Positions 1,004 to 30,990 of a DNA stretch of 32,616 nt are shown one piece after another; within the stretch, counting starts at the first letter, position 1; the number at the start of each line of letters is the position of its first letter. A program made the position numbers and the translations under genes. The notes beneath the pieces were generated by a model. It did no database searches. It saw nothing but the letters and a program-made list of their open reading frames with translations, and had not been told where the DNA came from. This DNA comes from Octopus bimaculoides (taxonomy: Eukaryota). The stretch lies in the NCBI RefSeq assembly GCF_001194135.2, contig NC_068984.1, forward strand, positions 2,806,587-2,839,202, read 5' to 3'.

Positions 1004-1233
1004 TATGACAACAAAAGAATGAATGAGATCTCGATATTATGTAAATAAAGGAATTTTGTCTATAAATATAATATGTGACAATTAGTTGGTTGTCATAATA
1101 AAACTCAGAGTTTCGGATGTCGGGGCTGAAGTCTGCTCCGGCATCTCATTTTGTTTGTGATGAGATGCCGGAGCAGACTTCAGCCCCGGCATCCGAAACT
1201 GAGTTTTATTATGACAACCAACAAATTGTCACA
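1004..1233. mobile_element. Inverted pair of PLE pLTR-like repeats (HHR family A) forming a ~73-bp-arm palindrome
   Basis: 1074-1148 is the near-perfect reverse complement of 1161-1233 with a 12-nt spacer. The minus strand of 1004-1148 aligns by eye with 12471-12608 and 15535-15635 (GAGATG.CGG...CCCCG...GAAACT..GAGTTTTATTATG.CAACC...AATTGTCACATATTAT) and ends against the (AAT)n at 945-1001. Confidence 0.75.
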
Positions 1234-1235
1234 AC

Positions 1236-1333
1236 TGGTTTTGGTGTGTTTACGTCCTCGTAACTTAGCAGTTCGGGAAAGAGACCGGTAGAAGAGTCTG
1301 GTACTTACCAGACTTATATATCCAAGTTGGTAC
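1236..1333 (+). mobile_element. Partial SINE family S1 (3' part)
   Basis: GGTGTGTTTACGTCCTCGTAACTTAGCAGTTCGGGAAAGAGACCG matches 10019-10065 and 7291-7340. Confidence 0.7.
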
Positions 1334-1594
1334 AAAACCAATATATATTCTACAAATTGTTTCAGAGTCTAATTAAATTCAAAGACAAAAACGAAAATCT
1401 CTTCTTGAAATAAAAGTAAAATAAGATTCTTCGTCAGGAATATATATATATATATATTCAAGAATAAGGGCAGAGAATCGTCAATTAATAATAGAATNNN
1501 NNNNNNNNNNNNNNNNNNNNNNNNNNNNNNNNNNNNNNNNNNNATATATACACACACACTTTATTAATACAACTGCAAAAGCATTACAAAAGAC

Positions 1595-1632
1595 CTGCTG
1601 CTCAGAGTTTCACGTTCCCGTTCATCGGACAG
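1595..1632 (-). ncRNA. Degenerate minimal type I hammerhead motif (family B, core CCGAUGA)
   Basis: Minus strand: ctgt CCGATGA acg-ggaa-cgt GAAA ctc-t-gag C A gcag. Stems I, II and III all form. U4 is C and U16.1 is C. Confidence 0.55.
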
Positions 1633-1749
1633 TTGTGGAGCAGTTGTATGTGATGTTTTGGCAGCTTTAATGATAAAGCATATTACTCTATCTCCAGTAT
1701 TCGAGTACTATTTTTACCCACCTTGTTTCACATTTATGAGCTTACTCTG

Positions 1750-1783
<34 letters not shown>

Positions 1784-3026
1784 GCGTGCAGTACGTCACA
1801 AAACGTAAACAACATGAAATACGAAGGCAAACCTGAGTATGCGAACGAGAGAAGCAAATGGAAAAGAAGACAAGTAAAATAAAGAACGACCCTTCATCAA
1901 TTGTCAGTTGTTTATCTACACCACATTTCGAGCAATTCACGACAATATGTGTCTTCGAAAAACAGTTGCTCCCGCGAACCAAAATAAAATTTGGGATTTG
2001 CGGACGGTCAAAACTGGTAATGAAACAAGACGGTGGAAACATACAACATACCAAACGAAAGCAAACATGGAGGGCTGTTAGGCGAGACGAGGTAAGGTAG
2101 CGAACACTGGAATATTCTTTGAAATATGGAAAAGATGGGAGAGGAGACAGGTAACAATGCGTCTGGTCTGTGCGACAGACTGAAGGAAAAGAAAGATGGA
2201 CGATGGTTACGTGTGAGCAACGGGAGAGAGTAAAGGAGGAAGAGGGAGACAAATAGAAAACGGTGATGGGGAGAAAAAAGAATTAGAGAAAGGATTAGAG
2301 AGAAAAAGCAAAAGGGGGGAAAGAATTCCAGAAAGGAAGAGAGAGAAAACGAAAGGGGGAGAGTGAGAAGACTACAGGTTAGAGTCGCATCAAAATTATT
2401 AAGATTAACTTACTTGGAATTGGATATATATATANNNNNNNNNNNNNNNNNNNNNNNNNNNNNNNNNNNNNNNNNNNNNNNNNNNNNNNNNNNNNNNNNN
2501 NNNNNNNNNNNNNNNNNNNNNNNNNNNNNNNNNNNNNNNNNNNNNNNNNNNNNNNNNNNNNNNNNNNNNNNNNNNNNNNNNNNNNNNNNNNNNNNNNNNN
2601 NNNNNNNNNNNNNNNNNNNNNNNNNNNNNNNNNNNNNNNNNNNNNNNNNNNNNNNNNNNNNNNNNNNNNNNNNNNNNNNNNNNNNNNNNNNNNNNNNNNN
2701 NNNNNNNNNNNNNNNNNNNNNNNNNNNNNNNNNNNNNNNNNATATATATATTTATATATATATATATATATATAGATATATATACACGCATACACACACA
2801 TATGTGTGTGTGTGTTTATGTGCACATGTTATCTTATACAGAATTACACGCACACCGCACCGTACATAGATGTATAGAGAGGGAGTGAGGGAGAGACAGA
2901 ATGGTACGATAGGAGGAGGGAGAGCGAGGAAGAGGAGGGAGAGAAGAAAGACCTACAAACAAATTTGATTGGAGATGTCTACTCGATGATTTAATCATGT
3001 TTCTACATCCTGTTGATTTTCAAAAG

Positions 3027-3067
<41 letters not shown>

Positions 3068-27438: not shown

Positions 27439-27522
<84 letters not shown>

Positions 27523-28753
27523 CCACACGTGCTACAATAAATCACACGTGATATAGACACCAACGCAAGATATTTCTTTTTTGTTTCAAAAGCAATCTGC
27601 ATCCTGGCCAGCCTCGAAATGGCCCAGAAGCCTGACTGAATGTAGGTTGTTATTAATTGCAATGGAAACCAGCTTGTTATCTGTGTGCAGTTGGCCGTAT
27701 AGCTTCCATCTTGATGTTTAAACACCCAGGTAATTATGGTGTATACACTGACAAACTCAGACTAATACACGCTTCCTTTTCGGCAATTAAAACTACTCTG
27801 CAATGAGAATGTAACATTCGCTCACACAAAACACACGCACGCACACATACATACACACACATACACACACGTACACACACACACATAACACTTACGTAAA
27901 TACATACACTCGTACATACATGCATATATAAATGCATACATATATATATATATATATACATATACAAATATACACACACACAGCTATACGTAAATACATA
28001 TTCATCTACACACATACATATACACATGCGCACACACATATGTACATATACATACATACGTACACACATATCTTGATATAGCAACATGTTTTATCTAAAT
28101 ATTACATGAGCCAACAAAGGAGCGCCTACATGATTGCTAGGTCTGCTAGAAATAACAACTCAGTCCCGCTTAAAGCGTAAGAAACACGTTGAATAATGCA
28201 GTTCTGGATTTCCGGCATATAGGGAACCAAAGGTAGAGCCCTGGATGGATTGCTCTAGATCATCGGTCTGCTTCATCAGGCTTTACCTTGAGGTTAATCA
28301 CGACCACAGTATTATCATCATCATCAACATCAACAGCAGCAACAGAAAATAAAATATAAAATATATTGTTGACGTCATAAGAAACTTTTATAAACTTTCG
28401 AGAGAACGTGAAATTATTATTTTCGGGAATAAAGGTTCTCGAAGCACATCGCATGCAGCTATAGAGAATAGCATGTAAATATTGGATTGGAAACCCCTCT
28501 TGGATGAAAAAAAGTTGAAGTCTGCTCATGGGGCTCGAACTCATATCCCTTGTAGACATGAAACGCAGCCTTCTACTTTTTCTATCCAAACGGGATTTCA
28601 GCTCAATATTTATACGCTATTCTTTATAGCTGTATTTGATGTGATTCGAGCACCATTATTCCAAAGTGTAATAAAGTATATGTATGTATACTTGCATGAA
28701 ACTATGTATGTATGCATGCATGTATGTACGTATGTATGTATGTNNNNNNNNNN

Positions 28754-28804
<51 letters not shown>

Positions 28805-28825
28805 TTATATTTGTATGTATGTATG

Positions 28826-29255
28826 ATTGGGTCAGCGGTCTTCGTATTAGCTTTCTCCTTTCTGGTTTTGAGAAGCCAAATTGCTCAAGATTGGCACCTA
28901 GGCAGCGTGTTACATATCTCAGTACACTAATAATTACAGGTACAAACCTGAACTTGTAATCTGGATAGAGTAACTGCAGATTTCTCAATAGTTCAGCATA
29001 GGTATTCTCTTTTTCACTGATCTTCATCTTTATGTTAATAACCGCTGGGCAGCTAATTTCCATAACCGTGCACAGTTTCTCTTCTCTATCCCAAATCACT
29101 ATATCAGGTCTGTTATGCTTACATTTTATTGAGATCTTCACTGGGACATTCCAACAATATTCCTTTTCATTATCAGTGGCTATGGTTTCTACCATATTGT
29201 GGGTTCTTATTTCTTTGTCCTCGGGATTATCCTTCTGACAGATTTCATTATAGAA
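28826..29255 (-). mobile_element. R4/Dong-type non-LTR retrotransposon fragment, restriction-like endonuclease domain
   Basis: Open frame YNEICQKDNPEDKEIRTHNMVET...WNVPVKISIKCKHNRPDIVIWDREEKLCTVMEISCP...KISEKENTYAELLRNLQLLYPDYKFRFVPVII: PD-(D/E)xK REL motif. Truncated at both ends by TATG/TG microsatellites. Confidence 0.88.
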
Positions 29256-29439
29256 TGTATGTATGTACGTGTGTGTATGTGCGTGCGTGTGCGTGTGCGT
29301 ATGTATGTATGTATGTATGTATGTATGTATGTATGTATGTATGTGTGTGTGATAGTTTTTATATTAAATTTGTGTTATCTATTCTTATATGTTTTACAAT
29401 ATTGGTTTAATACATAACTAACGAGAATATAATATTAGC

Positions 29440-29850
29440 TTCAAATTTTTGCACAAAGCCAGCAATTTCCGGGCCAGAGGTAAATCGATTACATCGATCC
29501 AAGTGTTCAACTGGTACTTATTTCATCGACCCTGAAAGGATGAAAGGCAAAGTTGATCTGGTCAGAATCTGAACTCAGAACATAAGCGAATTGCATGAAA
29601 CATTTTGTCCGCCGCCTTCGTCAAGAATATTTTGGTTTTCAGTTTTGACACAGGACCAGAAATTTTAGGGCAAGGAGTCAGTCAACTGCATCGACACCAG
29701 TGTTCAACTGGTACTTACTTTATCGACCCCGAAAGAATGAAAGGCAAAGTCGACCTCCGCAGAATTTGAACTTAGAGTGTAAAGACTAAAGAAATGCCGC
29801 GAAGCATTTCTTTTTCTGGCGCCGTAACGATTCTGCCAGCTCGTCGCCTT
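29440..29850 (-). mobile_element. Two tandem SINE family S2 copies (29440-29618, 29635-29850)
   Basis: Each contains GTGTTCAACTGGTACTTA.TT.ATCGACCC.GAAAG.ATGAAAGGCAAAGT...TGAACT.AGA. Confidence 0.85.
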
Positions 29851-30751
29851 AAGAACTAATATTAAAGGATGAACGGAATAATCGGCTACTTTAAAAACAG
29901 TCTTTGAGAATTTATATTCATAGCAGACTCCATTTTCGTAGTACATCGCTGAGGCAGTGTTTTATCTGTCTTATAGATTACATTAGAGGCACAACTTGCA
30001 GTCGTTTTCATCTCTACCTGTATTACAAAAACGACTTACAAGTCATCTGGTTTCTGTGTCTCTAGCGTCGTACATTACAGGCACGATACCTAAGCAGTTT
30101 AATCAGTGTCTGGCAGACGACAGTTGAATACGCAGTGTACTGAACGTCTGCTGCAAGTTTAACGAATTTATCATATAGCCACCGGGTGATTGATGTAAAT
30201 ACTGCGAGTGTGTGTTAAGCGGGGATTTATTAATAGGTGTGAGGGGCGGAAGCTACATAAGTGCTTAACACCCAAGGCATTTACTTAGTGGAAAGCTTCG
30301 TAGATTTACGTAGCTGTAGTTACTAAACTAATGTGTTAGATATTAATATGATGCTCACGTATTCTTAACTAGCATCAGACTATCCACAGGGATGTCTTCA
30401 GGCAAGAGACACATTTTGCTGATTATTGTAGCATGTCTCTCTGAATAGTAATGCAATTAGGGATTCGTGGAAAGTATGTTGCCTGACATTAAGACCTTAA
30501 GAAACATTTTCTAAAATTCTATATGCAAGTACCCTTAGTACCCAGAATCGGAGTTTGTAACGGAAGAAAGAACAGAAGACAAATTAATAATTCTCACACA
30601 TACATACGTACACACACATATACATTCATCACAAACACAAACTCTCACACACACACATATACACATAGGTATGTATGTGTGTGTATATGTATGTATATGT
30701 ACATATATGTGTATATGTACATATATGTATGTATGTATGTATTTCTTAAGC

Positions 30752-30990
30752 AGCAATATTATTGATAGTGACTTCGAAGTTTCAGCCATCCAAGCTGTTA
30801 TCAGACTCCGATGCATTGAAGTTAATGTTGGCTTAGTATAGTCTCTATTGAAATAAAAATTTCTTTGGGTATATGGGATTGAGCGGAGTAGTCTGAAGCA
30901 GTCCATACTTAGCTAGCCCATACTTCGAAGTCACTGTCAATAATATTCTTGCTAAATAATAATAAATTTGTACTGTACAAAAGTATATAT
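30752..30990. mobile_element. Head-to-head inverted pair of HHR family D repeats
   Basis: AATATTATTGATAGTGACTTCGAAGT (30755-30780) is inverted relative to ACTTCGAAGTCACTGTCAATAATATT (30922-30947). Each is preceded on its own strand by CGGAGT(AGT)CTGA. Confidence 0.65.

Follow-up and report, generated by a model that had tools for sequence, protein, structure and literature searches.

Many invertebrate genomes contain hammerhead ribozymes of Penelope-like elements (PLEs) and of retrozymes, with copy numbers in the thousands. Those of the minimal Penelope type reportedly cleave as dimers (Lunse, Weinberg & Breaker 2017). Here we describe a 32,616-nucleotide stretch of the Octopus bimaculoides genome (NCBI RefSeq assembly GCF_001194135.2, contig NC_068984.1, positions 2,806,587 to 2,839,202 of the forward strand), called the window below, which very probably holds relics of type I hammerheads, in numbers above chance and sitting within interspersed repeats. 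A literature search gave no account of hammerheads in cephalopods, the octopus included. The window comes from a draft animal assembly and consists of intergenic DNA of ~35% G+C, rich in repeats and packed with microsatellites of the types (TATG)n, (CA)n, (GA)n and (TA)n as well as with several interspersed repeat families. Its hammerhead relics belong to an already known kind of mobile element, and they leave the current understanding of hammerheads or PLEs unchanged.

Comparison with described systems

The minimal hammerheads of PLEs (Cervera & de la Pena 2014; PMC4209133) have a palindrome made up of positions 15.2-16.2 and loop 3; helix III forms only between two copies, an unpaired nucleotide lies between A9 and 10.1, the G10.1-C11.1 pair is present, and helices II and I have 6-8 and 4-5 bp. 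These ribozymes are located in the pseudo-long terminal repeats (pLTRs) of elements encoding a telomerase-like reverse transcriptase (RT) and a GIY-YIG endonuclease; most are solo, from truncated elements, and some form close pairs on opposite strands (PMC4209133). The motifs of the window (lettered as in Table 1) resemble them in their type I box order, in the self-complementary helix III of families A (ACUC-N-GAGU) and D (ACUUCGAAGU) and of sites H1 and H2 (ACAA(T)TTGT), a feature that F and E do not have, in a long helix II (8 bp in A1R) combined with a short helix I (5-6 bp), in the G10.1-C11.1 pair of family A, and in being mostly solo and scattered with some close opposite-strand pairs. 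They differ in the unpaired nucleotide of family A, which precedes G12 on the 3' strand of helix II and does not lie between A9 and 10.1, in the lack of any detectable Penelope open reading frame (ORF) or pLTR arrangement in the window, and in the damage that every copy shows.

Animal non-LTR retrozymes carry a type I hammerhead in head-to-tail tandem units of 150-450 bp (Cervera & de la Pena 2020; PMC7229834). Family A, as a short non-coding unit of ~190 nt with one type I hammerhead, is like them (PMC7229834; Li, Clavereau & Pollet 2026, 10.64898/2026.07.22.740005), and F and E are near the canonical metazoan motif (helix I like UCCAG/CUGGA, short palindromic helix III). The hammerhead-bearing units of the window, however, are not in tandem, and the arrangement that defines retrozymes is therefore lacking. 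Type I hammerheads are also found in the SINE-like (short interspersed element-like) repeat Sm-alpha of Schistosoma and in newt satellite 2, both cited in PMC4209133. There, as here, the hammerhead belongs to a short, highly repeated non-coding element and has a weak helix III, on account of which the dimer would be the active form, and the sequence of F is close to the Rfam type I consensus; the ribozymes of those two systems are, by contrast, intact and active, satellite 2 is tandem, and Sm-alpha has RNA polymerase III features, whereas the window has no tRNA-like structure.

Hammerhead motifs and their excess over chance

The cores were read against the hammerhead numbering of PMC4209133, a perfect core of the type I hammerhead (Rfam RF00163, clan CL00010) consisting of CUGANGA, GAAA and UH (U16.1-H17) in type I order, with helix I open. 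A reading of the sequence alone had listed motifs here from about seven families, and each of them was found at its position, though B, C and G, roughly a third of what was listed, fail as hammerheads, so that this observation is only partly borne out. Perfect cores occur in A2, A3, E, F, H1 and H2; B, C, G and every single D copy lack one. Each hammerhead copy has at least one lesion (truncation, loss of helix II or core mutation), so none would be expected to cleave, and all three helices are intact in no single copy, only in the composite consensus of family A.

A strict descriptor demanding a flawless helix II missed every claimed site, and one defect per helix was allowed afterwards. The resulting three-helix descriptor (perfect core, helix I of at least 4 bp and helix II of at least 3 bp with one defect allowed in each, A15.1-U16.1, H17 not G) finds four sites (E, F, H1 and H2) against 0.53 ± 0.70 in dinucleotide shuffles, none of 450 of which reach four. 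When ~1300 permuted-core decoys were run on the real sequence, the mean was 0.36-0.42, and two decoys reached four. A minimal descriptor, in which the core is perfect, helix III is fully self-complementary and helix II is not required, also finds four (A2, A3, H1 and H2), against 0.10 ± 0.31 in controls (0/400 reaching four). Since A2 and A3 are homologous, the independent events are fewer than these raw counts. The excess is thus real but limited to perfect-core motifs, and motifs with one core mismatch stay at chance level; degenerate sites are therefore informative only when they lie in a repeat family, as D does.

The heptamer CTGANGA by itself occurs 23 times on the two strands (13.9 ± 3.5 expected; 2/100 shuffles reach 23), six of these occurrences being those of the perfect-core motifs.

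The count of about seven families was too high: B, C and G fail in core and topology and have no second copy. The density is likewise lower than the suggested one per 3 kb, as the 30.4 kb of read sequence contain six perfect-core motifs, or ~1 per 5 kb, which stand for four to five independent families. The tiny or palindromic helix III ascribed to nearly all sites is real in A (ACTC-N-GAGT) and D (ACTTCGAAGT), while the AATATT of C and the ACCC-A-GGG of G exist outside a hammerhead context. There are 16 runs of N in the window, 2215 N in total, 14 of them inside the range spanned by the motifs; none of the claimed motifs crosses an assembly gap, and the lengths of the gaps matter only for the density estimate, for the distance of ~3.07 kb between A2 and A3 and for the 3' tail of A2.

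Table 1. Hammerhead-like sites, family A units and copies of an abundant interspersed repeat; positions count from the first letter of the window.
Feature	Position	Strand	Description
A1L	1094-1151	-	Left foldback arm, truncated in first core box (AAATGA); helix II 7/8 pairs; helix III ACTC-T-GAGT
A1R	1157-1213	+	Right foldback arm, truncated in first core box (GTGATGA); GAAAC, helix III and UH kept
A2	12462-12522	+	GATAA / CTGAAGA / ... / GAAAC-TTGGAGT-T / TTATC; perfect core
A3	15525-15580	+	TAATAA / CTGACGA / helix II region / GAAA-CTCGGAGT-T / TTATTA; perfect core
Family A unit, A2	12435-12627		Repeat unit
Family A unit, A3	15499-15635		Repeat unit
Family A unit, A1	~960-1233		Head-to-head foldback
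D minus copy	30767-30809	-	GGAGT / CTGATAA (G8->A) / C-AGC...GCT / GAAA-CTTCGAAGT-C / ACT; head-to-head with plus copy
D plus copy	30890-30935	+	CTGAAGC (A9->C), CATAC replacing GAAAC; ACTTCGAAGTCACTGTCAATAATATT block as in minus copy
D half	4681-4701	+	GGCC-GAAAC-TTCGAA-GTC-ACT; 3' half of third D copy
F	17984-18029	-	UUCUGU CUGACGAG [11 nt] CGAAACGC CA GUGUC CCAGAA; perfect core; single copy in window
E	23541-23582	+	TCCAGA / CTGATGA / C-GAG-CAAGA-CTC-A / GAAA-CTAC-TC / TCTGGA; perfect core; single copy in window
H1	1341-1447	-	ATATATATTC / CTGACGA / AGAATCT...52 nt...AGACTCT / GAAA-CAATTTGT-A / GAATATATAT; absent from sequence-only reading
H2	4034-4125	-	TTCC / CTGATGA / 65-nt AT-rich spacer / GAAA-CAATTGT-A / GGAA; absent from sequence-only reading
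H2'	4219-4314	+	H2 motif in other foldback arm; two core changes (CTGGTGA, GAATC)
B	1595-1628	-	CCGATGA (U4->C), C for U16.1; single copy in window
C	11496-11513	-	Only CGACGAAAATATTTTGAC; no CUGANGA box in register; single copy in window
G	26555-26611	+	CCGATGA (U4->C), AAAA for GAAA, A for U16.1 (ACCC-A-GGG-A); single copy in window
SINE-like repeat of at least seven copies	1218-1293, 6851-7088 + 7221-7477, 9774-9990 + 10001-10195, 15938-16248		Copies
Same repeat	17634-17801, 22480-22668, 24217-24619		More copies

Repeat families and sites

Family A is a well-supported family of hammerhead relics. Its four copies form a genuine repeat with a unit of ~190 nt, in which the hammerhead lies ~30 nt from the 5' edge. 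The two A1 copies had been read as truncated, and both are indeed cut inside CUGANGA, at nearly the same nucleotide. The two arms of their foldback are 89% identical; the left one extends to ~960 and has a (TTA)n tail, and the right one extends to ~1233, where it gives way to a SINE-like repeat. A1R lacks the 5' strand of helix I and has an intact helix II of 8 bp (GATGCCGG/CCGGCATC) with one bulged C before G12 of GAAA. In A2 helix II is broken by substitutions (CCGACTTCT), and the tail of the unit runs into a microsatellite and the gap 12655-12844. A3 has a helix I of 6 bp and the helix III ACTC-G-GAGT, and a 7-nt deletion has taken out the 3' strand of its helix II. The tails of the A units end in (TTA)n or (TA)n.

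The four copies are ~20% diverged, and the sole variable position of their first core box is the unconstrained N7 (C, A, U, U). There is no variation in GAAAC or in U16.1-H17, the G10.1-C11.1 pair is present, and the self-complementary helix III ACTC-N-GAGT is found in 4/4 copies; helix I, of 5-6 bp in A2 and A3, shows a compensatory change from A-U (A3) to G-C (A2). For the hammerhead structure as a whole 88% of cells pair, as compared to 33-53% with the partners slid. A dimer of the composite consensus, joined through helix III, has a predicted energy of -53.7 kcal/mol versus 2 x -21.0 (-42.0) for two monomers. Pattern scans of the metagenome collection gave no further copies of family A.

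Family D is plausibly a hammerhead relic in three decayed copies. The best-conserved block of this repeat is GAAAC-TTCGAA-GTC-ACTGTCAATAATATT, with a helix III that is a perfect 10-nt palindrome (ACTTCGAAGT) in all three, and the unit at 4673-4753 shares 88.9% identity with 30907-30987. The minus copy has an extra C after A9, a helix II of only 3 bp and A-U at 10.1/11.1. The plus and minus copies have different core mutations, which are compatible with, without proving, a perfect ancestral core. The site at 4681 had been taken for half a motif and is in fact the 3' half, with no recognisable CUGANGA box upstream of it.

Site F is well supported as the relic of a canonical type I hammerhead. 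It aligns across all 45 positions of the Rfam Hammerhead_1 model with 25 bits, short of the gathering score (34 bits), and with E-values of 0.0096 in a search of 5.7 kb and 0.00024 in one of 141 nt, and the match extends beyond the core boxes, including CUGACGAG, CGAAACGC and GUC. Its helix II has collapsed to G10.1-C11.1 and one G-U, the first pair of helix I is mismatched, and helix III has 4 bp with a 2-nt loop and is not of the palindromic dimer type. Site E, plausibly another relic, has a helix I of 6 bp, a helix II of only 3 bp with an unpaired C and A at its base (the C being an extra one after A9), and a helix III of 1 bp whose loop, CUAC, is one change from the palindrome CUAG; even a 171-nt search of E gave no Rfam match.

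Sites H1 and H2 are also plausible as hammerhead relics. H1 has a perfect core, the helix III ACAA-T-TTGT and a helix I of 10 bp taken partly from a (TA)n run; its core boxes are 67 nt apart, and in the minimum-energy fold some core bases pair elsewhere. H2 has a perfect core, the helix III palindrome ACAATTGT and a weak helix II, and lies in one arm of a foldback at 3964-4382 whose arms (H2 and H2') share 81% identity. The H2 element has a third copy at 23090-23300, much decayed, in which no motif is recognisable. H1 and H2 align with a score of 101, against 82 ± 6.8 in shuffles; they were rejected as clear homologues, the score being suggestive only, since the shuffle maximum is 106.

As to style, A and D, and perhaps H, are minimal hammerheads, with a self-complementary helix III that is unable to close as a hairpin; F is of the canonical metazoan style, as E probably is.

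Origin of the relics

Of the interpretation put forward in the sequence-only reading, the presence of above-chance hammerhead relics in repeats (A, D, F) stands, the family count and the density do not, and the Penelope coding tie could not be verified. On balance we favour the view that the relics are dead copies of short retroelements from several families, whose source elements bore type I hammerheads and were of Penelope or retrozyme origin. For active source elements the literature (PMC4209133, PMC7229834, PMC8557442) suggests the following route. Two ribozyme copies, carried by one transcript or by two, would pair through the palindromic helix III, the dimer forming two active cores, and each core would cleave after H17 to free a unit-length RNA. 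This RNA could then be copied into DNA by a Penelope-type RT supplied in trans, with integration favouring microsatellites and often yielding 5'-truncated, head-to-head inverted copies. Cleavage, dependence on Penelope and the retrotransposition route would all apply to the source elements in this scheme.

The architecture of the insertions is consistent with such a route. The window has three inverted pairs, arranged head to head and with truncation on their 5' sides (1094-1151/1157-1213, 4034-4125/4219-4314 and 30767-30809/30890-30935), and PLE insertions are known for an inverted 5'-truncated copy adjacent to another copy and for a bias toward microsatellites (PMC8557442), though the window is so rich in microsatellites that association with them carries little weight by itself. 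The tie to Penelope is one of structure, and weaker than had been stated. A2 and A3, ~3.07 kb apart and both on the plus strand, were also considered as the two pLTRs of one Penelope element, and were rejected as such because there is no RT or endonuclease between them and because the two units, besides having separate 5' edges, end differently on the 3' side.

A number of results weigh against this origin. With Rfam, the whole window gives no match at gathering thresholds (at E ≤ 10, the top 150 of 202 matches are microsatellite or foldback "miRNA" (microRNA) noise), and searches of 160-460 nt gave no hammerhead match at E ≤ 10 for E, A3, A1/H1 or H2. Motifs with exactly one core mismatch show no excess (15 observed, 13.5 ± 3.5 expected), so that D rests on the homology between its copies and not on the motif. 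In family A, 259 of 500 shuffles reach the observed covariation score, a test that cannot become significant with only four A copies and three D copies. H1 and H2 are atypical, with core boxes 65-67 nt apart and a helix II that folds weakly or in competing ways, and H2 may be a coincidence, its core having no counterpart in the sister arm or in the third copy. Self-comparison of the window shows no hammerhead-bearing units repeated head to tail. Finally, Pfam detects no RT or GIY-YIG domain in the ten best ORFs, none at E ≤ 10 in two GIY-YIG-like fragments, and no RT or endonuclease in the three motif-strand frames upstream of A2, E, F and D or in the A2-A3 interval, with a sensitivity that is limited for old, frameshifted remnants.

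The three PLE endonuclease remnants of the sequence-only reading could not be verified, as neither Pfam, nor PDB, nor a word-indexed protein search names one. The segments ~9330-9440 and 26061-26370 (+) are GIY-YIG-like by eye only (Y-I/L-G ... FK.R...H...F). The fragment at ~26.06-26.37 kb has too few words in common with any database protein, and a PDB search of the endonuclease-like fragments gave chance matches only. An exhaustive HMMER search with ORF 9231-9515 yielded one relative, from a Logan assembly, with no Pfam domain. The Logan contig (SRR11869391, 902 nt) is collinear with the window from 8439 to 9555 at ~74% identity, which marks this segment as a transposable element of unassigned class, not shown to be Penelope.

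One alternative is that the ribozyme history is real and the Penelope link wrong, the units being SINE-like (RNA polymerase III) or satellite-type sequences mobilised by long interspersed elements (LINEs), as in the case of Schistosoma Sm-alpha or newt satellite 2. The short unit of family A (~190 nt), its dispersed solo copies and simple-repeat ends, the abundance of SINE-like repeats in the window together with a LINE-like ORF at 32062-32616, and the lack of any Penelope coding sequence found would all agree with this. We nevertheless consider it unlikely: ARAGORN finds no tRNA-like structure anywhere in the window, an A or B box is not evident by eye in family A, inverted head-to-head pairs and a minimal palindromic helix III have been reported for PLEs (PMC4209133, PMC8557442), and a preprint derives animal retrozymes from Penelope pLTRs (10.64898/2026.07.22.740005).

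A second alternative would make the motifs chance matches to a short, degenerate descriptor in AT-rich repeat and inverted-repeat DNA, and the families ordinary repeats with no ribozyme history. The Rfam and one-mismatch results above speak for it, B, C and G are clearly at chance level, E, H1 and H2 have no independent support, the helix I of H1 uses a (TA)n run, and A2 and A3, being homologous, are not fully independent counts. Yet the perfect-core excess survives both the dinucleotide shuffles and the permuted-core decoys, the core of family A varies at N7 only and is accompanied by a compensatory change in helix I, and F fits the Rfam consensus well beyond its core boxes, so that this explanation seems to us quite improbable. 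Less probable still is that the inverted structures (A1 1074-1233, 3964-4382 and D 30740-30990) are assembly artefacts or DNA transposons of the foldback or MITE (miniature inverted-repeat transposable element) type with an incidental hammerhead likeness: all three are near-complete palindromes with short central spacers, in a draft assembly whose 16 gaps include at least one with a duplicated flank (7057-7139 / 7189-7271), but A and D also occur with the same sequence as solo non-palindromic copies (A2, A3 and 4673-4753, which holds the D half at 4681), from which the basic unit is not itself a palindrome, the divergence of the arms (A1 89% and H2 81% identical) argues against an assembly artefact, and truncation on the 5' side with outward 3' ends fits products of reverse transcription.

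Returning to the retroelement origin, one could go further and suppose that A, and perhaps D, represents an undescribed lineage of short, non-autonomous hammerhead retroelements, inserted not in tandem but singly, as units of ~190 nt with a microsatellite tail, or as inverted dimers of snap-back type, with a helix II bulge on the 3' strand, that intact copies elsewhere still undergo dimer cleavage and are a source of abundant small RNAs, and that family H is a hammerhead whose helix II domain is unusually large (65-67 nt); taken together these suppositions are doubtful. Confirmation of the families genome-wide would add one more animal lineage with hammerhead-bearing retroelements and would provide consensus sequences for cleavage and circular-RNA tests. 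A genuine family H would stand out by the size of its helix II domain. For annotation, the window illustrates that hammerhead descriptors allowing one core mismatch match at the chance rate in repeat-rich DNA, where information is carried only by perfect-core motifs or by motifs backed by a repeat family.

Rejected sites

B, C and G were rejected as hammerheads, each having at least two core defects and no other copy in the window and belonging to a relaxed class that occurs at chance frequency. In B the 5' strand of helix I is moreover 10 nt away from the core, and in C the nearest box is CTGAGCA, with no helix II. B was also considered as a diverged member of family A and rejected, since the covariance model of that family recovers only its four training copies and not B.

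Other elements and repeats in the window

The transposable element that begins at 8439 extends to 9780, more than 1.3 kb, and has an inverted partial copy at 24985-25306. Its start is formed by a sequence of the second SINE-like family described below, and its decayed ORF 9231-9515 contains the stretch Y-L-A-M-T..FK.R...H...F. The fragment 26061-26370 looks related to it, and Pfam finds no domain. Two further ORFs may be noted. That at 32062-32616 (+), of 185 codons, lies in a G+C-richer segment, ends ...SPGLDGLPYELY and runs off the end of the window; it has no Pfam match and no database relative at E ≤ 0.001, and presumably resembles the region just upstream of LINE reverse-transcriptase domains. 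That at 28656-29195 (-), of 179 codons, is broken by the gap 28744-28753 and has no Pfam match; it contains NRPDIVIWD...VMEISCP, which we take to be like the PD-(D/E)xK nuclease motif of some retroelements.

The repeats of the window presumably resemble cephalopod SINEs. An abundant one, with at least seven copies of 65-88% identity and an internal (TA)n/(GT)n microsatellite (Table 1), adjoins the A1 foldback; we take it to be a tRNA-derived SINE-like repeat, yet ARAGORN gives no tRNA-like fold for it. A second SINE-like family is found at 8311-8643, 21960-22180 and 29428-29865; two of its stretches, 29432-29579 and 29629-29776, stand in tandem at 76% identity, and 8316-8614 matches itself in inverted orientation. 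That tandem pair, 11843-12011/12023-12189 and 7057-7139/7189-7271 are the only direct repeats at an offset of 130-200 nt, and they are unrelated to the hammerhead units. The two 83-nt stretches of the last of these are 97.6% identical and flank the gap 7140-7188; they are probably a duplicated gap edge, an assembly artefact and not a real tandem repeat.

Sub-threshold Rfam matches to miRNA families (MIR166, mir-297, mir-3149, mir-1277 and others) occur at 1116-1193, 3118-3197, 19660-19980, 27274-27402 and elsewhere, and were rejected as miRNA genes, their source being the A1 foldback and microsatellite hairpins. Trinucleotide arrays at 17030-17250, of (GAT)n with GAC/GGT variants, and at 18117-18690, of (TAC)n-(TAA)n-(GAT)n, give rise to long artificial ORFs rich in His, Asp or Ile.

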